From NCBI GenBank assembly GCA_037447605.1, contig CM074806.1:2976001-3040000 (forward strand): a DNA stretch of 64,000 nt, in the 5' to 3' direction. The notes beneath the pieces were generated by a model. It had not been told where the DNA came from. It did not search any database and saw only the letters and a list, made by a program, of their open reading frames with translations. Shown in pieces: positions 5,401-51,956 of this stretch. The DNA is from Zygnema circumcarinatum SAG 698-1b (lineage: Eukaryota; Plantae; Zygnematophyceae). How positions within the stretch are numbered: position 1 is the stretch's first letter; every line of letters begins with the position of its first letter. Both the position numbers and the translations under genes were made by a program.

Positions 5401-5459
5401 TTTTTTTGGTTTTTTTCCCATTTTAGGGCTACGTGGCAACACCTGACTGGATAAGCATT

Positions 5460-5732
5460 TGATCCGACGAAACGCACAACCAATCAGGACGCGCGACGTG
5501 GCAACGTCCGACTCGTGGCAGCAGACACTCTTTCCCCACTCAACGCTCCTCCGACCTCCTAACCACAACCATACACCACATAAAACATCAAAATCAAACG
5601 CCGTCGTACATAGAAAACGACACGTGGCAATGACAGAATAAGTACGCAATATACCCCATTTTCTGCGCATTCGATCCAATGAAACGCACAACCAATCAGG
5701 TCGCGCGACGTGGCAACGTCAGACTCGCGGCA
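5460..5732. repeat. Two-copy ~60-bp direct repeat containing ACGTGGC
   Basis: GATCC..GAAACGCACAACCAATCAGG(A/T)CGCGCGACGTGGCAACGTC(C/A)GACTCG occurs at ~5461 and ~5673. Confidence 0.75.
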
Positions 5733-41174: not shown

Positions 41175-42038
41175 GGGGGCGACTATTTACAGTAGGGGGT
41201 GTCAGACTTAAAAAATTTCAGTACGCGTGTTCGTAAGTTTGACATCAGAACGAGTACTCCAGTATAATCGCGATCCTCCTGCGGCGGAGTACTTTCGTAA
41301 TCTTTTTTTTCGTAACGCTTTTCGTAAGATTTTGTTAAGTCTGACACCCCCTAGTGTACGGATTCTGAATGTAGTGTACGATTTCGCCGGGCAGCAAAAA
41401 AAAATCATTTTTTTGGTTGCCCGGCGCTGTTTCATACTTTTTAGAATAGATATAGACCTTTTTTCGTCGGATGTACGGATAGTGATTTGAAATGTACCAA
41501 GCGCGCGCGTCTACAAGGTAGAAGGGCGCAACACGTGGAGCGACATGATTGGTGCGGCAACATATGACGTGACAAGTATGTTTGGGACCGTGACGTGACG
41601 AAACGAGACGCGACAAAAGTGGAGTCCGCGGACGGCAGTCGGAAATGGCGGGAATAAAAACTGACAGATTTTTCCTGAAACACGCTACGTTATGTGCCCT
41701 ACCTTTCTCTGTCAGTTTTAATTCCGGCCATTTCCGACTGCCGTCCGCGGACTCCACTTTTTTCGCGTCTCGTTTTGTCACGTCACGGTCCCAAACATAC
41801 TTGCCACGTCATATGTTGCCGCGACCAATCATGTTGCTCCACGTGTTGCGCCCTTATACCTTGTCGACGCGCGCGCTTCGTACATTTCAAATCACTATCC
41901 GTACATCCGACGAAAAAAGGTCTGTATCTATTCTAAAAAGTATGAAACAGCGCCGGGCAACCATAAAAAGGATTTTTTTGCTGCCCGGCGAAATCGTACA
42001 CTACATTCAGAATCCGTACACTGTAAATAGTCGCCCCC
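41175..42038. mobile_element. Foldback/Mutator-like hairpin element
   Basis: Arms at 41175-41668 (including a MITE insert) and 41708-42038 are ~330-bp near-perfect inverted repeats around a 39-bp loop. The termini are GGGGGCGACTATTT. ATACAATA is an exact 8-bp TSD (41167-41174, 42039-42046). Confidence 0.9.
41194..41352. mobile_element. MITE with a 3-bp AGT TSD, nested in the left arm of the foldback element
   Basis: TIR AGGGGGTGTCAGACTTA is perfect over 17 bp. AGT lies on both sides. The opposite foldback arm shows the empty site TTTAC-AGT-GTACGG. Confidence 0.85.
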
Positions 42039-43426
42039 ATACAATATTATCGCCCGATATTTGCCAAAACCATGGCGAAACTATCATGGGGTCCTACTGT
42101 AACAGTAGTTGACTGGTACCGTACAATGCCGGGCGCGCTGTGATTGACGCCGTACAGTACACACTCGAGAAGTGGCCGTACGGAAAATAAGGCGTGGCGC
42201 GCGCTCATCGGACGGTCTGGACGGCGCCGCCGCGAGATGGGCGCGCCAATCGCAGGCGCCACGTGACAACCCACCCAGCAGACCCCGGACCGCCGGACTG
42301 CTCGCCAAGTGGCAGCCCGCAGACGGTCAAGATGCAGTGGCGGTGTACTGAAGCGGCCCGAGGCCACGTCGCCGCGCGGCGGCGGTCGTACGAAGACGGC
42401 GCTGGGGGGCAAAAACCTGCCACTGTCGAAAAAAAGCAAACGAGCACAAAGAGAAGGAAGTGGCATTGGTCTCGCGATGGCGAGGCCATCCAATGCACTA
42501 AAGGGCGTGGCCATACTGCACCGTGTCGAGCGCGAGCGAGAGCTGCGCCACACACCGCGCAGTTGGATAGGCCCTCGCATCAAAATTCTATGGTTGGCAT
42601 CGCCATCGTGAGACCACTGCCACATCCCCCCCCCCACCTCGACTCCAACAGCAAAGTTCCAGTTCTTGTTATCATTAAACAAAAGAGGTGTATTAGGGAG
42701 TCCTGCCTCGGTGCTTCTCACCTTCAACTATTTCATTGGGCGTGGTGGCTGTCTCCACTATAGACCCTACTGAGACTACGGTAGACTTGGTAGCGAAGCT
42801 CAGGGTCAAAAATAAAACTGGGCCTCATCCTAACAGACTCATCCACTGAATTTTACAACCACTTCCTATCACGCATATCAATGTACTGCATTACAATGAA
42901 GAGGGAGAATTTATTGTCAAAACAACCAGCCAAACAACGCAGGTACACCAAACACGAAATACCAACCCCCTTTTTTCCCAACTCATTATTCAAAACCTGT
43001 GGCAAAATGAGAATCGTGAAAATAAGAAAACCTTGAAGAAATCCTTTCATAAAGGATGATTACATTAGATGCTCCTGAATTAAAACGCGATGGGATCAAA
43101 AGTCTAGCTTCTGATGTGCTATACAAGCCAAGGGCCATATTGTGGACTAAATCATCTCTCTAGCCTACCGCTTACATGTACCCTTCATCTACCCTCACTG
43201 AAGCTAATGCACTAGGGGATCGAGTGACCAACCGCATGCTGTCACCTTTCAAAAAATCAAGTGCAACGAAGCTACGAAGAGCTACGAAGTTCCCTTGAAA
43301 AGCCTATCCCTAAACTATCTCCTACCGGCCATCTGGGCACTTTCAGCAACAAGTAATTTTTCTCTGTACATTGCTCGAAGGTGAGGTCATCCATGGGGGC
43401 CATGGACGGTGCCAGGTGGCAGTCCG

Positions 43427-44399
43427 TCAGAGCGTGGTCGAGCAGGAGACGTAGAGGTCGTTGCCCTCCGGCATGTCGGGGGTGTAGCCCGTGAGGACGC
43501 TGACCATCTGGCACTTGGCGTCGTCTGAGATGGGGGCCACCTTGCCGTCCTCCCAGAGCGTGGCCACGCAGCGGTCCGAGTTGGCGGTGCAGGCGGCCAC
43601 GCAGCTCTCCGCGCTGTCCGCGAAGTACGCCTCCCACACTCCCACAGGGAACGTCGCCAAGTGCAACTCGTAGCCCGCGATCACCGCGCCGCACCCGGCT
43701 GCACTCACACACGGGGGAAGGGGGGGGTCAGGCAGGAGCTGGAAGCATGCCGTGGGGTAAATACAGCTGCTAACATCAAGGCCAATTGCATTCATTCAAC
43801 TCGAGTGGCCAGGGCTATGGAAGTGGAAGGGGTGGAGGGGTAAAGGCGCACTGTTGCAGGGCGTGTAGAGGTCGACGCCGTCCGGCATGCCGGGGACGAA
43901 GCCGGTGAGCTCGCTGACGAACTGGCACTTGGCGTCGTCGGAGTACGGCAGCACCTTGGCGTCCTCCCAAAGAGTGGCCACGCAGCGCGCGGAGTTGGCG
44001 GCGCAGGCGGCGGCACACGCGGCCGCGCTGTCGGCGAAGTACGACTCCCACTTGCCCTTGGGGAACGTGTTGCTGTGCTTCTCCCACCCGGCGATGCTCG
44101 CTCCGCAGGCAGCTGGCAGAGGAGACAGCCCAGACCGCGCGCCGTCAGTACCCCATCCGCCATTCTGATCACGCAGGAGCCATGGCCCCGCTGAGCTGGC
44201 AATGCAGGGATGGCAAAGGGCAGGTCAAGAGAGGGCACGCACTCAAGTTGGTGACAAAGCTGGAGGCGGGAGCTGCGTCGGGGTTGACGTCCACGGAGGC
44301 GGCCGAGAGGGTGCCTGTCGACAGCTTGCGGGGGGCGGCCATGGCCACACCGGCGCAGGCGAAGGCCAGAACGGCCAGAAGCACGAGTGAGCGAGCCAT
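43427..44399 (-). CDS. Secreted protein with two Cys-rich PAN/apple-like modules, copy A (229 aa)
   Basis: Exons 44399-44243, 44112-43852 and 43698-43427, with GT-AG phase-1 introns. The signal-peptide-like N-terminus is MARSLVLLAVLAFACAGVAMA. The frame is open to TGA. Confidence 0.85.
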
Positions 44400-44695
44400 G
44401 GTGTCCTGACGGGGACTTTTGGGCCGAGTTCAGTGAAGGCTGTGACGGGCGAGAGAGAGCAGACGGGCAGCGGAGGCGGCAAGAGAGAGGGAGAGTGAGA
44501 GGGAGAGGGAGAGGGGAAGAGGCGGCGATGGAGTTCGAGGGTGCCGCAGCACCGTCTTTATACGACCGCCGCCGCGCAGCGACGTGGCATCGGGCCACGT
44601 CCGTACACTGCCACTGCATCCTGACCGTCGATCTAAGGACCTTTCGTCACGTAGTACAGTACTGTAGTCTGAAGTGAAATCACGACCCCCTTGAG

Positions 44696-45537
44696 CAGGG
44701 TTCGTCAAATAGGGGATTTCGGCTTAAGATAGGGGACTGTCCCCTAAATTGGTTTTGTAAAAACACGTAAATATGGACTGTACGGACGAAACCGTACACG
44801 TACGGACAAGACAGGAGTACAGGAAGACAGGAATTGTTTGGGAGAAAGACGAGTTTCGAAAGAGGTTGACAGACTTTTCATTGGAAGGAATTCTTCACTG
44901 CAAACAGTTTGATAGTTTGACCGCTCTTCGAGGGTCTCTTTGAGTAGTTTGCATCACTTCTATAGCTGTCTTGTTCAGCCTAAAACTCCTAAGGGAGTGG
45001 GACCATTTTTCATTTCATTTCTAATTTTAGTTCCTATTTCAGTTTTTCTTTTGTGACTACACCTAGAATTTCAGAGGTTATGATTTGGAATAGAGTTTTT
45101 GTGAGGAAATTTCAAGACTATGATGGATTCTAAAGTGATACTTGGAGTAATTAATGATGGATGGAAAAGGAAATAGAGAGCTTAGGATTGGATCTACAAA
45201 GTTTTCAAGCAATTGGGTTTTTGAATAAGCAACTATATGTTGTGATTGCCAAATGCACAGTTGTTCTAATTGATTGGTAAAATTTACCAATCTATAAGAG
45301 TCGAAGAGGTTGCACCAGTTTCTAAAGCCGTGTTGTTATACCAACAAGTAAAGTTCATATACATCATTGCTATCGTGGTTGCAAATGCAATTCATTTCCT
45401 TTTTGTTTTTAACCAAAAAAATGCTTTTTTGGGGCTTGTGTGGTATTTAAGTTGAAATCACGTAAACTAATCTCAAAATCTTACATAAATAAGCTATTTA
45501 CGATATTTAGGGGATCTCCCCTATTTGACGAACCCTG
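44696..45537. mobile_element. Non-autonomous hAT element
   Basis: A perfect 21-bp TIR CAGGGTTCGTCAAATAGGGGA and an exact 8-bp TSD CCCTTGAG (44688-44695, 45538-45545). The empty site is present upstream of copy C (~49965-49972, reverse strand). A weak transposase-like remnant RKRLTDFSLEGILHCKQF lies near 44860-44915. Confidence 0.9.
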
Positions 45538-45926
45538 CCCTTGAGTGAAGCCGTACGTTGTCGGGCGCGCTGTGATTGGTCCCGTACATGTGCGAGCAGT
45601 GGCCGTACGGTGGCGCAGCCTGGGGGCCGTACGGCATTCTCCGCCGTTCGCCCTCCGCCGTTTGCCCTTCGCGTGATCGTGCGCTCATCGGACGGTCCCA
45701 ACGGCGCCGCTGCGAGATGGGCGCGCCAATCGGAGGCGCCACGTAGCAGTCCACCCCGCAGACTGCGGACCGCCGGAATGCGCGCCACGTGGCAGCCTCC
45801 GCGTACCCCCCCGCGGCCATAAGGGCCGCGCCGCGACCCCTCTCGGCCAAGCCCTCAGCGCCTCCCTCCGCCTCCGCCTCCCCTCGCATCCTTTCCTCCT
45901 CCGCAGCCAGCCCCCGCCAGGCCGCC

Positions 45927-46899
45927 ATGGCTCGCTCACTCGTGCTTCTGGCCGTTCTGGCCTTCGCCTGCACCGGCGAGGCCTTGGCCACCCCCCGCAA
46001 GCTGTCAACAGGCACCCTCTCGGCCGCCTCCGTGGACGTCAACCCCGACGCAGCTCCCGCCTCCAGCTTTGTCACCAACTTGAGTGCGTGCCATCTCTTG
46101 ACCTGCCCTTTGCCATCCCTGCATTGCCAGCTCAGCGGGGCCATGGCTCCTGCGTGATCAGAATGGCGGATGGGGTACTGACGGCGCGCGGTCTGGGCTG
46201 TCTCCTCTGCCAGCTGCCTGCGGAGCGAGCATCGCCGGGTGGGAGAAGCACAGCAACACGTTCCCCAAGGGCAAGTGGGAGTCGTACTTCGCCGACAGCG
46301 CGGCCGCGTGTGCCGCCGCCTGCGCCGCCAACTCCGCGCGCTGCGTGGCCACTCTTTGGGAGGACGCCAAGGTGCTGCCGTACTCCGACGACGCCAAGTG
46401 CCAGTTCGTCAGCGAGCTCACCGGCTTCGTCCCCGGCATGCCGGACGGCGTCGACCTCTACACGCCCTGCAACAGTGCGCCTTTACCCCTCCACCCCTTC
46501 CACTTCCATAGCCCTGGCCACTCGAGTTGAATGAATGCAATTGGCCTTGATGTTAGCAGCTGTATTTACCCCACGGCATGCTTCCAGCTCCTGCCTGACC
46601 CCCCCCTTCCCCCGTGCGTGAGTGCAGCCGGGTGCGGCGCGGTGATCGCGGGCTACGAGTTGCACTTGGCGACGTTCCCTGTGGGAGTGTGGGAGGCGTA
46701 CTTCGCGGACAGCGCGGAGAGCTGCGTGGCCGCCTGCGCCGCCAACTCGGACCGCTGCGTGGCCACGCTCTGGGAGGACGGCAAGGTGGCCCCCATCTCA
46801 GACGACGCCAAGTGTCAGATGGTCAGCGTCCTCACGGGCTACACCCCCGACATGCCGGAGGGCAACGACCTCTACGTCTCCTGCTCGACCACGCTCTGA
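45927..46899 (+). CDS. Secreted protein with two Cys-rich PAN/apple-like modules, copy B (229 aa)
   Basis: Exons 45927-46083, 46214-46474 and 46628-46899. The N-terminal variant is MARSLVLLAVLAFACTGEALATPRK, and the 5' leader differs from A and C. Confidence 0.85.
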
Positions 46900-48025
46900 C
46901 GGACTGCCACCTGGCACCGTCCATGGCCCCCATGGATGACCTCACCTTCGAGCAATGTACAGAGAAATTACTTGTTGCTGAAAGTGCCCAGATGGCCGGT
47001 AGGAGATAGTTTAGGGGTAGGCTCGGGGTAGTTTAAGGGAACTTCGTAGCTCTTCGTAGCTTCGTTGCACTTGATTTTTTGAAAGGTGACAGCATGCGGT
47101 TGGTCACTCGATCCCCTAGTGCATTAGCTTCAGTGAGGGTAGATGAAGGGTACATGTAAGCGGTAGGCTAGAGAGATGATTTAGTCCACAATATGGCCCT
47201 TGGCTTGTATAGCACATCAGAAGCTAGACTTTTGATCCCATCGCGTTTTAATTCAGGAGCATCTAATGTAATCATCCTTTATGAAAGGATTTCTTCAAGG
47301 TTTTCTTATTTTCACGATTCTCATTTTGCCACAGGTTTTGAATAATGAGTTGGGAAAAAAGGGGGTTGGTATTTCGTGTTTGGTGTACCTGCGTTGTTTG
47401 GCTGGTGGTTTTGACAAAAGTTTCCACTTCATGGTTGTGCAGTACATTGATAAGCGTGATAGGAAGTGGTTGTAAAATTCAGCGGGTGCAAAGGGGCACG
47501 GCTCGACTTGGACAAAGCATTGCGCACAGCTGTTGACAACTAGCCACGAAACGCGCCCAGGATTCGAATGCAGTCAAACGAAACCCTAAAAGCATTGATT
47601 AGCGGTCATGGACGTTTGGAGTACATTGTAATGATGAGAGCAAGGCGTTTCAGACATGCTGACGTCGACATGCTGACTCAAGAAAGTTACGATGAGAAGG
47701 CCCACTTTTATTTTTCACCCTGATCTTCCCTACCAAGTCTATCGTAGTCTCAGTAGGGTCTATAGTGGAGACAGCCAACTTTCCCAATGAAATAGTTGAA
47801 GGTGAGAAGCACCGAGGCAGGACTCCCCACTACACCTGTTTTGTTTAATGATAACAAGAACTGGAACTTTGCTGTTGGAGTCGAGGTGGGGGGGGGGGGA
47901 TGTGGCAGTGGTCGCACGATGGCGATGCCAACCATAGAATTTTGATGCGAGGGCCTATCCAACTGCGCGGCGTGTGGCGCAGCTCATGCTCGCTCTCCAC
48001 ACGTGGCCACGCCCGTTAGTGCAAT

Positions 48026-48825
48026 AGGGGGAGTCAGACCTTGTCCATCGCCAAACCAATTCCGCGAGCCCGTCGGGCCAAGTCCGCGTTATACGGCAGG
48101 CCTTTTCCGCCAAAAGTGGACGTTCGACAGGCTCGGGCGCCGCGAATTCAAGAGAGCAATTATTTTACCTTTGCATCTCCGGGCCAGGTTTGACTCCCCC
48201 CTTTTCGCCCCCCCGCGCTCCCTCAGCCGCCCGCCGCCCGCCGCCCGCCGCCCTCCGTTTTGTCGCCACGCGCGCCTCACACGTGCGAAAGGCCCTCGCA
48301 CGTGCGTGACGCGCATGGCGACAAGGCGGGGCACGATTCCTCATCGGCGGAAATCTGGAATTTCGAAACGGGGGGCCTCCAGAGGCCCCCCGTTTCGGAG
48401 CGCGGAATTCTGAAATTTGAGGACATTTTTGTAACCTATTCCGCCGTACGGACGTGACAGACAGGTTCGGGGGGAGCCGTGGTTTCCGATCCGAATTCTG
48501 CAATCGAAATCAATACCTTTTCGCAGAGGGAATCTTTGAATTCCGCAGGCGATGGTCAAGGTCTGACTCCCCCTAATAGCCATCTCCTTTGCCGTGCGCT
48601 CTTTCTATTTTTCGGAGAATAAAACTGCACCCCCTATTTTGAATATCCCACCGAACCTGTCTGTCCAGTCCGTACTTCGAAATAGGTTACAAAAATGAGA
48701 TACAGGCTCGGCGCCCGAGCCTGTCGAACGTCCACTTTTGGCGAAAAAGGCCTGCCGTACAACGCGGAATTGGCCCGACCGGCTCGCGGAATTGGTTTGG
48801 CGATGGACAAGGTCTGACTCCCCCT
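48026..48825. mobile_element. TIR element with a 3-bp AAT TSD and two right ends (same terminal family as the 41194 MITE)
   Basis: The left end AGGGGGAGTCAGACCTTGTCCATCGCC at 48026 is preceded by AAT. Right ends at 48574 and 48825 are each followed by AAT and the same ~78-bp flank. The second right end extends the inverted match to ~115 bp. Confidence 0.8.
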
Positions 48826-48864
48826 AATAGCCATCTCCTTTGCCGTGCGCTCTTTCTATTTTTC

Positions 48865-49593
48865 GGAGAATAAAACTGCACCCCCTATTTTGAATATCCC
48901 ACCCCCTTTTTGAAATTTTTGCCCTCCCATTTTGGTTACCCCCCCCTGTTTTGGATATTTCACCCCCTGTTTTGGATATTTTACCCCCTGTTTTGGATAT
49001 CCCAGCTTCCTGTCTCGGATATATTGAGAGGAGATATCCTCTGGCCTCCCCTCCCGTCCCCTCCACTCCAGTCCTCTTCTCTCTTCTCGGTTTGCAATGT
49101 CCACAAAAATGCTACCAACTGAGTATGAGACCCGCGATGAACTCGTACAAGTCATGACCGAGCACTACAAGCACGAAGAATTTCACATCAAGATCGGCAG
49201 GCATAGCGACAGCTGCCGACTCCACCTGCAATGCTTCTGCGTTTTTGCACTTGGGCCTAATTTAGTTTAAGTTTTTTCTTAAGTTTTCTGCTCCTAGTTT
49301 TTTTATTTTGTGCTTAGGTCATTTGCGACCAGTCTCTCGTGGGTCCCCATGCTGACTTCGTCTATGTTCATATGATGGCCTTACAATCGTGAGATCAATA
49401 CAAATCCCCTTTCCTATTGTTGCACAATGTTGGAAGTCAGTAATGAAAAGGAGAAAACAAGGGGGGTGGGATATCCAAAGTAGGGTTGAAATATCCAGAA
49501 CAGGCGGCCGGATGACCAGAATGGAAGGGCAAATCTTTTCAAAGGTGCGGGGCGGGGAGGATATCTAAAATAGGGGGTGCAGTATCGTTCTCC
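48865..49593 (+). mobile_element. Internally deleted Mutator-like element with a transposase N-terminal remnant
   Basis: TIR GGAGAA…ACTGCACCCCCTATTTT at both ends and subterminal TTTTGGATAT repeats. A short ORF from ATG 49097 (MSTKMLPTEYETRDELVQVMTEHYKHEEFHIKIGRHSDSCRLHLQC) resembles the MuDR/FAR1-type N-terminal DNA-binding pattern. The TSD is degenerate (CT(A/T)TTTTTC). Confidence 0.7.
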
Positions 49594-49659
49594 GCTTTTT
49601 TTCGAGTGGCAGGTTTTTGCCCCCTTAGCGCCGTCTTTGCACGACCGCCGCCGCGCGGC

Positions 49660-50101
49660 GACGTGGCGTCGGGCCACGTCCGTACACCACCACTACATCC
49701 TGACCGTCTGAGGGCTGCCACGTGGCGCGCATTCCGGCGGTTCGCAGTCTGCGGGGTGGACTGCTACGTGGCGCCTCCGATTGGCGCGCCCATCTCGCAG
49801 CGGCGCCGTTGGGACCGTCCGATGAGCGCACGATCACGCGAAGGGCAAACGGCGGAGGGCGAACGGCGGAGAATGCCGTACGGCCCCCAGGCTGCGCCAC
49901 CGTACGGCCACTGCTCGCACATGTACGGGGCCAATCACAGCGCGCCCGACAACGTACGGCTTCACTCAAGGGGGTCGTGATTTCACTTCAGACCAGTACT
50001 GTACTACGTGACGAAAGGTCCTTAGATCGACGGTCAGGATGCAGTGGCAGTGTACGGACGTGGCCCGATGCCACGTCGCTGCTCGGCGGCGGTCGTATAA
50101 A
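49660..50101 (+). promoter_or_regulatory. G-box/ABRE-rich upstream region and TATA box of copy C (mirrored for copy A)
   Basis: ACGTGGC or its reverse complement occurs at 49661, 49673, 49717-49726 (palindromic GCCACGTGGC), 49766, 50058 and 50070. TATAAA is at 50096-50101. Confidence 0.55.
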
Positions 50102-50258
50102 GACGGTGCTGCGGCACCCTCGAACTCCATCGCCGCCTCTTCCCCTCTCCCTCTCCCTCTCACTCTCCCTCTCTCTTGCCGCCTCCGCTGCCCGTCTGCT
50201 CTCTCTCGCCCGTCGCAGCCTTCACTGAACTCGGCCCAAAAGTCCCCGTCAGGACACC

Positions 50259-51232
50259 ATGGCTCGCTCACTCGTGCTTCTGGCCGTTCTGGCCTTCGCC
50301 TGCGCCGGTGTGGCCATGGCCGCCCCCCGCAAGCTGTCGACAGGCACCCTCTCGGCCGCCTCCGTGGACGTCAACCCCGACGCAGCTCCCGCCTCCAGCT
50401 TTGTCACCAACTTGAGTGCGTGCCCTCTCTTGACCTGCCCTTTGCCATCCCTGCATTGCCAGCTCAGCGGGGCCATGGCTCCTGCGTGATCAGAATGGCG
50501 GATGGGGTACTGACGGCGCGCGGTCTGGGCTGTCTCCTCTGCCAGCTGCCTGCGGAGCGAGCATCGCCGGGTGGGAGAAGCACAGCAACACGTTCCCCAA
50601 GGGCAAGTGGGAGTCGTACTTCGCCGACAGCGCGGCCGCGTGTGCCGCCGCCTGCGCCGCCAACTCCGCGCGCTGCGTGGCCACTCTTTGGGAGGACGCC
50701 AAGGTGCTGCCGTACTCCGACGACGCCAAGTGCCAGTTCGTCAGCGAGCTCACCGGCTTCGTCCCCGGCATGCCGGACGGCGTCGACCTCTACACACCCT
50801 GCAACAGTGCGCCTTTACCCCTCCACCCCTTCCACTTCCATAGCCCTGGCCACTCGAGTTGAATGAATGCAATTGGCCTTGATGTTATCAGCTGTATTTA
50901 CCCCACGGCATGCTTCCAGCTCCTGCCTGACCCACCCCCTTCCCCCGTGTGTGAGTGCAGCCGGGTGCGGCGCGGTGATCGCGGGCTACGAGTTGCACTT
51001 GGCGACGTTCCCTGTGGGAGTGTGGGAGGCGTACTTCGCGGACAGCGCGGAGAGCTGCGTGGCCGCCTGCACCGCCAACTCGGACCGCTGCGTGGCCACG
51101 CTCTGGGAGGACGGCAAGGTGGCCCCCATCTCAGACGACGCCAAGTGCCAGATGGTCAGCGTCCTCACGGGCTACACCCCCGACATGCCGGAGGGCAACG
51201 ACCTCTACGTCTCCTGCTCGACCACGCTCTGA
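50259..51232 (+). CDS. Secreted protein with two Cys-rich PAN/apple-like modules, copy C (229 aa)
   Basis: Exons 50259-50415, 50546-50806 and 50961-51232. Module 1: ACGASIAGWEKHSNTFPKGKWESYFADSAAACAAACAANSARCVATLWEDAKVLPYSDDAKCQFVSELTGFVPGMPDGVDLYTPCN. Module 2: GCGAVIAGYELHLATFPVGVWEAYFADSAESCVAACTANSDRCVATLWEDGKVAPISDDAKCQMVSVLTGYTPDMPEGNDLYVSCSTTL. Confidence 0.87.
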
Positions 51233-51956
51233 CGGACTGCCACCTGGCACCGTCCATGGCCCCCATGGATGACCTCACCTTCGAGCAATGTACAGAGAAA
51301 TTACTTGTTGCTGAAAGTGCCCAGATGGCCGGTAGGAGATAGTTTAGGGGTAGGCTCGGGGTAGTTTAAGGGAACTTCGTAGCTCTTCGTAGCTTCGTTG
51401 CACTTGATTTTTTGAAAGGTGACAGCATGCGGTTGGTCACTCGATCCCCTAATGCATTAGCTTCAGTGAGGGTAGATTAAGGGTACATGCAAGCGGTAGG
51501 CTAGAAAGATGATTTAGTCCACAATATGGCCCTTGGCTTGTATAGCACATCAGAAGCTAAGACTTTTGATCCCAACGCGTTTTAATTCAGGAGCATCTAA
51601 TATAATTATTCTGTATGAAAGGATTTCTTCAAGATTTTCTTATTTTCAAGATTTTCTTATTTTCAAGATTTTCATTTTGTCACAGGTTTGTCAAAATGAT
51701 CTGGGAAAAAACGAAGGGAGGAGAAAAGAAAGAGGTTGTGGCTTCGTGTATGGTGTGTTGTGTGACTGGTTGCTTTGAAAATAAGGGCTTCCTCTTCATG
51801 GTTTGGAAGTACAGTGATATGCGCTATAAGATGTAAACGTAAAAGTCAGCGGGGCCGAAGGGTCACGGCTTTACTTGGACAAAGCATCGCGCGCAGCTGT
51901 CGACAAGCAGCTAGGCACCCAGGATGTGTATCTAGTCAAGGTGGTACATGCGGCAA

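Follow-up and report, generated by a model that had tools for sequence, protein, structure and literature searches.

What is the small cysteine-rich protein that is encoded three times over in one short region of Zygnema circumcarinatum SAG 698-1b DNA, and what might it do? The genes lie at 43427-51232 of a 64,000-nucleotide stretch (contig CM074806.1, positions 2,976,001 to 3,040,000 of the forward strand), which was analysed as a whole, is called the window below and supplies all coordinates. A first-pass annotation, made from the letters alone, had described a secreted protein with two modules of six cysteines each, had guessed at a PAN/apple identity for the modules, and had put the protein forward as an unrecognised family and a candidate new system. 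Our analysis suggests that the genes are recent duplicates, kept alike by gene conversion, for a secreted binder made of two PAN/apple domains.

Three copies of a three-exon gene

A landmark search combined with repeat analysis identified three intact copies of one three-exon gene within the window. Copy A is on the reverse strand (44399-43427), where exon 1 (44399-44243) encodes a signal peptide and linker, exon 2 (44112-43852) PAN module 1, and exon 3 (43698-43427) PAN module 2 and the stop codon, the introns being 130 and 153 nt long. Copies B (45927-46899; exons 45927-46083, 46214-46474 and 46628-46899) and C (50259-51232; exons 50259-50415, 50546-50806 and 50961-51232) are on the forward strand, and A and B are arranged head to head. 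In all three copies the exons measure 157, 261 and 272 nt, summing to 690 nt or 229 codons plus stop, and are separated by introns of 130 and 153 or 154 nt, both in phase 1 and bounded by GT..AG. The splice donors read GTGCG and the acceptors consist of a polypyrimidine tract followed by CAG. The amplification to three intact copies that had been proposed is thus confirmed, far beyond chance, and the spliced 229-residue model holds, with frames and splice sites kept in each copy. A tblastn search of the window found no fourth copy, no coding-sequence relic and nothing else module-like.

The composition of the exons is in keeping with coding sequence: GC content at third codon positions in the chosen frames is 0.83, 0.94 and 0.97 for exons 1, 2 and 3, against an overall GC content of 0.57-0.65 in the introns, and retention of either intron brings in a stop codon. 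Comparing module 1 with module 2 gave a ratio of non-synonymous to synonymous substitution rates (dN/dS) of 0.57. As had been remarked, a list of open reading frames (ORFs) misses the protein and contains only fragments of it. Arg/Pro-rich ORFs of 275 residues that overlie the genes out of frame were considered and rejected as artefacts of GC-rich frames.

The translated protein consists of a signal peptide, a linker of about 30 residues and two 86-residue modules, one in each of exons 2 and 3. Shufflable extracellular modules are classically encoded by symmetric phase 1-1 exons; exon 2 is such an exon and holds exactly one PAN module, and exon 3 is entered in phase 1. The exon 1 translation starts with the predicted signal peptide MARSLVLLAVLAFACAGVAMA, followed by the linker. 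Judged by hand, the N-terminus comprises MAR, a hydrophobic core at residues 4-17 (Kyte-Doolittle values up to 3.3) and then A-M-A, or A-L-A in copy B, which is consistent with the secretion-type N-terminus claimed for the protein. The predicted mature form has about 208 residues and 12 cysteines, a mass of 21.6 kDa and an acidic composition (24 D/E versus 11 K/R). Its sole N-glycosylation sequon, N-L-T, spans the exon 1/2 junction and is not kept in the relative P0008 described below. Both modules show the spacing C-x29-C-x3-C-x6-C-x18-C-x22-C in all three copies, and the motifs that had been quoted for them (WE.YFADSA, CVATLWED.KV, SDDAKCQ and DLY) were recovered in the translations; module 1 and module 2 share 69% identity. 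In the linker, predicted to be disordered (predicted local distance difference test, pLDDT, <50; exon 1 part at 50322-50414), the pattern R-x-L ... S-x-D-V-N ... T is invariant in all full-length relatives and may be a processing or sorting motif.

The copies differ little, and unevenly. The A and C proteins are identical and their genes one synonymous base apart, whereas B differs at eight bases, six of them inside 36 nt of exon 1. Those six replace four residues around the signal-peptide cleavage site (AGVAMAA to TGEALAT), and a further change substitutes A for T in module 2, which brings the total to five residues; the few differences between copies that fall in exons 2 and 3 are for the most part synonymous. 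Sites by which a copy can be told apart are exon 1 in B and position 250 of exon 2 in C. The near-identity of A and C starts some 300 nt ahead of the ATG and continues for about 1 kb past it, while that of A and B begins 18 nt upstream of the ATG, and farther upstream the two cannot be aligned. This step-like similarity, together with the more diverged first 80 nt of B, fits gene conversion acting over older duplicates. The three copies would have arisen by recent segmental duplication of a head-to-head unit and been kept alike by gene conversion.

PAN/apple modules in a narrow family

The exons were used singly as queries, and a full-length natural relative (P0008) served as proxy for the joined protein. 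A word search with exon 2 returned one relative, P0001, and a profile search against 1.84 billion representative proteins returned five matches at E <= 0.001, four of them true. Rejected among the candidates was a bacterial protein of 2938 residues (P0005, E 1.6e-8), which shares only a repeated T-F-P-x-G-T-W-E in the cysteine-free immunoglobulin-like (Kre9_KNH) repeats of a type IX secretion system protein. A profile word search added P0008, a complete ORF of 230 residues from a Trinity transcript assembly in EukProt. Three of the relatives (P0002, P0008 and P0012) match the window modules with E values of 1e-49 to 1e-86.

P0008 is colinear with the gene. Exon 1 corresponds to its residues 18-56, followed by one residue for the junction codon; exon 2 aligns to 58-143 with 86% identity, a single residue then stands for the second junction codon, and exon 3 aligns to 145-230 with 69% identity, with no gaps at the joins. 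Since P0008 is transcript-derived, this colinearity with exons and junction codons supports the splice model. In three other relatives that are ORF calls on genomic contigs (P0001, P0003 and P0007), similarity ends exactly at the module borders, and the intron positions are therefore conserved. P0002 (230 residues) and P0012 (241 residues) have the same two-module build. The six cysteine positions are kept in nearly all of the relatives' modules, except that the last cysteine is missing from module 2 of P0002 and that C3 and C4 are separated by an insertion in module 1 of P0012. In a tree of all modules, from which the near-duplicates P0010, copy B module 2 and P0014 were left out, the module 1 and module 2 clades separate with support of 97/98, which places the internal duplication before the divergence of the sampled species. 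A word search with P0002 returned only itself, and a scan of metagenome contigs with two peptide patterns, which already fit P0001, yielded 114 pattern matches, none of which was confirmed. As far as the retrieved sequences go, the subfamily is very narrow, comprising a handful of algal transcriptomes and environmental contigs.

The identity of the modules is indicated by their sequence profiles. Exon 2 alone scores 17.1 bits against PAN_4 (PF14295) and 15.7 bits against PAN_1 (PF00024), and exon 3 alone 18.1 and 15.8 bits, respectively (E 0.003-0.006 for PAN_4 and 0.013 for PAN_1). The Pfam gathering cut-offs for whole proteins are 27 bits for PAN_4 and 21.4 bits for PAN_1, and a rough sum of both modules would pass the two. 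Among the relatives, P0002 is above both cut-offs (PAN_4 28.7 bits, PAN_1 21.6 bits), and P0008 and P0012 are above that for PAN_1 (26.3 and 26.1 bits). At the level of a lead, P0002 most resembles, by language-model features, clusters of plasma kallikrein and factor XI-like proteins (score 0.89). The cysteine pattern is that of PAN/apple modules, with a C-x3-C pair, two partner cysteines and an outer cysteine pair.

An AlphaFold model of P0008, built on 14 sequences, points to the same family. Its mean pLDDT is 55.8, with module 1 at about 70 and module 2 at 50-68, and its topology is strand-strand-helix-strand-strand-strand, twice. Foldseek matched this model to the apple domains of factor XI and prekallikrein with an E value of 5e-5 and a probability of 1.0 over about 180 columns, that is, both modules. 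Also matched were the Sarcocystis muris lectin SML-2 (E 0.03), the HGF N domain (root-mean-square deviation, rmsd, 2.4-3.0 over about 88 columns) and plasminogen. A second alignment of the Foldseek list (VIA) gave Z scores of 8.5 for factor XI, 6.6 for TgMIC4 apple-5 and 5.9 for the PAN domain of plant SRK, the remaining scores being given with the comparisons below. Among the 50 matches listed nearly all are PAN-type or PAN-related, thyroglobulin being the exception. A non-PAN fold, which by the first-pass annotation's own account would have refuted it, was looked for on P0008 and PAN/apple was found instead; on this model the fold is PAN/apple. By homology with apple domains, each module would be a beta-beta-alpha-beta-beta-beta unit with disulfides C1-C6, C2-C5 and C3-C4, and the C-x3-C pair would sit on the central helix. 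Besides the cysteines, the most conserved stretch of the family is W-E-D ... S-D-D-A-K-C-Q, which in the P0008 model maps to the loop and strand that follow the third strand.

The PAN/apple guess of the first-pass annotation is therefore upheld by relatives that pass the Pfam cut-offs and by the modelled fold of P0008. By the same evidence its suggestion of an unrecognised family and a new system falls away, because the relatives pass the PAN_1 and/or PAN_4 cut-offs and the predicted fold is a textbook PAN/apple one. The protein is an ordinary member, of familiar architecture, of a lineage-restricted subfamily within a well-known domain family.

Comparison with known systems places the protein closest in build to SML-2 (PDB 2YIL/2YIO/2YIP), which is likewise small and secreted and consists solely of two tandem PAN/apple modules. 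The structural match to it spans both modules (Z 7.8 over 123 residues). SML-2 differs, however, in being an apicomplexan microneme protein with 16-20% identity and no sequence-level match, and its galactose binding gives no ground for assigning sugar binding to the algal protein. The factor XI and prekallikrein apples (PF00024) share tandem six-cysteine modules of about 85-90 residues with C-x3-C on the helix, but there four apples are joined to a serine protease, whereas the algal protein has two modules alone, and identity is 14-19%. The best structural matches of a single domain are to plasminogen (Z 9.5, rmsd 2.7 over 76 residues) and HGF (Z about 8, rmsd 2.5-3.0), in each case to the N-terminal PAN domain; those domains differ in having only the four-cysteine core, followed by kringles, and no equivalent of their ligands (heparin, MET and kringle 5) is present here. 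The fold is also that of the PAN module in G-type lectin receptor kinases and S-locus glycoproteins, as seen in the SRK match, but the algal protein is without the B-lectin, S-locus glycoprotein, transmembrane and kinase parts, and its modules match PAN_1 and PAN_4 rather than the PAN_2 of the plant kinases. To our knowledge these PAN_2 kinases and S-locus glycoproteins are the only widespread PAN context in land plants, the sister group of these algae. In the searchable literature we found no paper pairing PAN/apple with zygnematophyte genera and no stand-alone PAN proteins described there.

A proposed secreted bivalent binder and its alternatives

PAN/apple modules serve to bind glycans or proteins. 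Because the protein consists of two such modules and nothing else, a bivalent extracellular binder is the simplest reading of its architecture. We propose that it would leave the cell by the secretory route and act outside as a bivalent binder or cross-linker, with the conserved W-E-D ... S-D-D-A-K-C-Q loop and strand as the putative binding surface of each module. The likeliest partner would be a glycan of the cell wall or mucilage, and otherwise a protein. The three copies would probably raise dosage. Taken as a whole, with a secreted bivalent two-PAN/apple binder of this kind encoded by recent, converted duplicates, we put this reading at a probability of roughly 0.6. Were the ligand found, the protein could be used as a probe for wall or mucilage components.

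Several observations weigh against this proposal. The fold evidence comes from the relative P0008, which is 86% and 69% identical to modules 1 and 2, and from a model of moderate confidence, and AlphaFold of window module 1 alone, with an alignment of seven rows, gave an unusable model (pLDDT 42). The single exons of the window fall below the Pfam gathering scores, and sequence searches of solved structures with each exon, with P0002 and with a three-sequence profile gave no match at E values up to 10. The recurrence in the promoters of ACGTGGC, the core of the G-box/abscisic acid response element (ABRE), is not independent between duplicated promoters, and the motif is also found elsewhere in the window. 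Lastly, Closterium genomes are reported to show extensive gene duplication and copy-number variation, yet with tandemly repeated genes making up <1% of orthogroups (PMC10407611), and the presence of three copies may stem from the high rate at which genes are generally duplicated in those genomes rather than from selection for dosage.

Other roles have to be weighed against a bivalent binder of the wall or mucilage. A small, secreted, disulfide-stabilised protein with a conserved linker motif (R-x-L ... S-x-D-V-N) might be a diffusible signalling ligand, such as a mating or cell-cell recognition factor, that is seen by a surface receptor. PAN modules act as receptor ligands elsewhere, and the HGF N domain and the SRK PAN domain are among the structural matches. 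Moreover, Closterium mating employs secreted glycoprotein pheromones (PMC5736609). The family is, however, spread over several transcriptomes and environmental contigs with a conserved and slowly evolving module 1, unlike fast-evolving mating factors, and we consider a signalling ligand unlikely. Similarly improbable in our view is that the narrow family serves conjugating green algae specifically as an extracellular signal or recognition factor, used in pairing, adhesion or stress signalling, in which the linker motif and the S-D-D-A-K-C-Q loop would form a receptor surface and G-box/ABRE-type promoters would drive the three copies. The protein might also be a lectin or decoy for defence against microbes or grazers, which would bind foreign glycans or proteases through its two PAN modules, with an arms race driving up copy number. 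Stand-alone PAN lectins do exist, as exemplified by SML-2, the amplification to three copies is recent, and the G-box/ABRE-like motifs are compatible with stress induction. Yet the copies, 99% identical and homogenised, show no trace of diversifying selection between them, and conservation within the family is highest in the putative binding loop, unusual for a surface engaged in an arms race; a defence role is thus doubtful.

It is also conceivable that the genes are silent recent duplicates that have no function themselves, being either unexpressed or produced by assembly duplication. The protein collections searched yielded no transcript of precisely this gene, and the copy-number variation of Closterium genomes noted above would be in line with such an origin. 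But frames, splice sites and every cysteine are kept in all three copies, the differences in exons 2 and 3 are mostly synonymous, and the close relative P0008 is transcribed with the same structure. A simple assembly duplication is disfavoured because the flanks of the copies differ, one interval carrying a transposon insertion and one gene a distinct promoter. We regard silent duplicates as very improbable and retain the bivalent extracellular binder as our preferred explanation.

Flanking regions, transposon and promoter motifs

The duplicated unit includes a 3' untranslated region (UTR) on one side and shared upstream sequence on the other. The 3' flank of copy A (42846-43426, reverse strand) is common to the flanks of B (46900-47482) and C (51233-51653). 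The region upstream of A (44400-44695, reverse strand), which contains a TATAAAG box, is 99% identical to 49965-50258 upstream of C. The larger region upstream of C (49713-50258, forward strand) equals the spacer between A and B minus a transposon. Upstream of B (45538-45926, forward strand), the segment 45538-45797 is shared with the distal upstream region of C (99%), and 45798-45926 is a B-specific proximal promoter and 5' UTR.

The transposon, read directly from the sequence, is a non-autonomous, hAT-like element of 842 bp that lies between A and B at 44696-45537, with no strand assigned. It ends in perfect 21-bp terminal inverted repeats (CAGGGTTCGTCAAATAGGGGA) and is flanked by an 8-bp target duplication, CCCTTGAG, at 44688-44695 and 45538-45545. 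An unoccupied version of the insertion site survives at 49965-49972 upstream of C, indicating that the element inserted after the duplication had taken place.

Each of the three genes carries two or three ACGTGGC motifs in the 200 nt or so that precede its ATG, in the A/C-type and B promoters alike. There are two at 44582-44600 upstream of A and three at 45738-45793 upstream of B, and upstream of C the motif is found at 49717-49772 and 50058-50076. Across the window ACGTGKC occurs at 37 sites, compared with 9.5 expected from shuffles. As a lead only, the ACGTGGC pairs suggest that light- or stress-responsive bZIP factors control the genes. Clusters of ACGTGGC also occur at 49661-49772, 42258-42369 and 5431-5714, including relic promoters.

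Relics of the promoter region without a gene are present at 42192-42437 and 49594-49839 (86-87% identity). The latter, upstream of C, faces away from it, as if C had formerly had a head-to-head partner gene that was lost to repeats inserted at about 48.0-49.6 kb. Between B and C we find an inverted repeat pair (48025-48142 and 48709-48826, 97%) and a direct pair (48548-48652 and 48799-48903, 99%), which probably belong to a foldback element or one resembling a miniature inverted-repeat transposable element (MITE). Just to the left of the gene cluster, a 670-bp inverted self-match in perfect register (41353-42022, 91%) represents a palindromic or foldback element.

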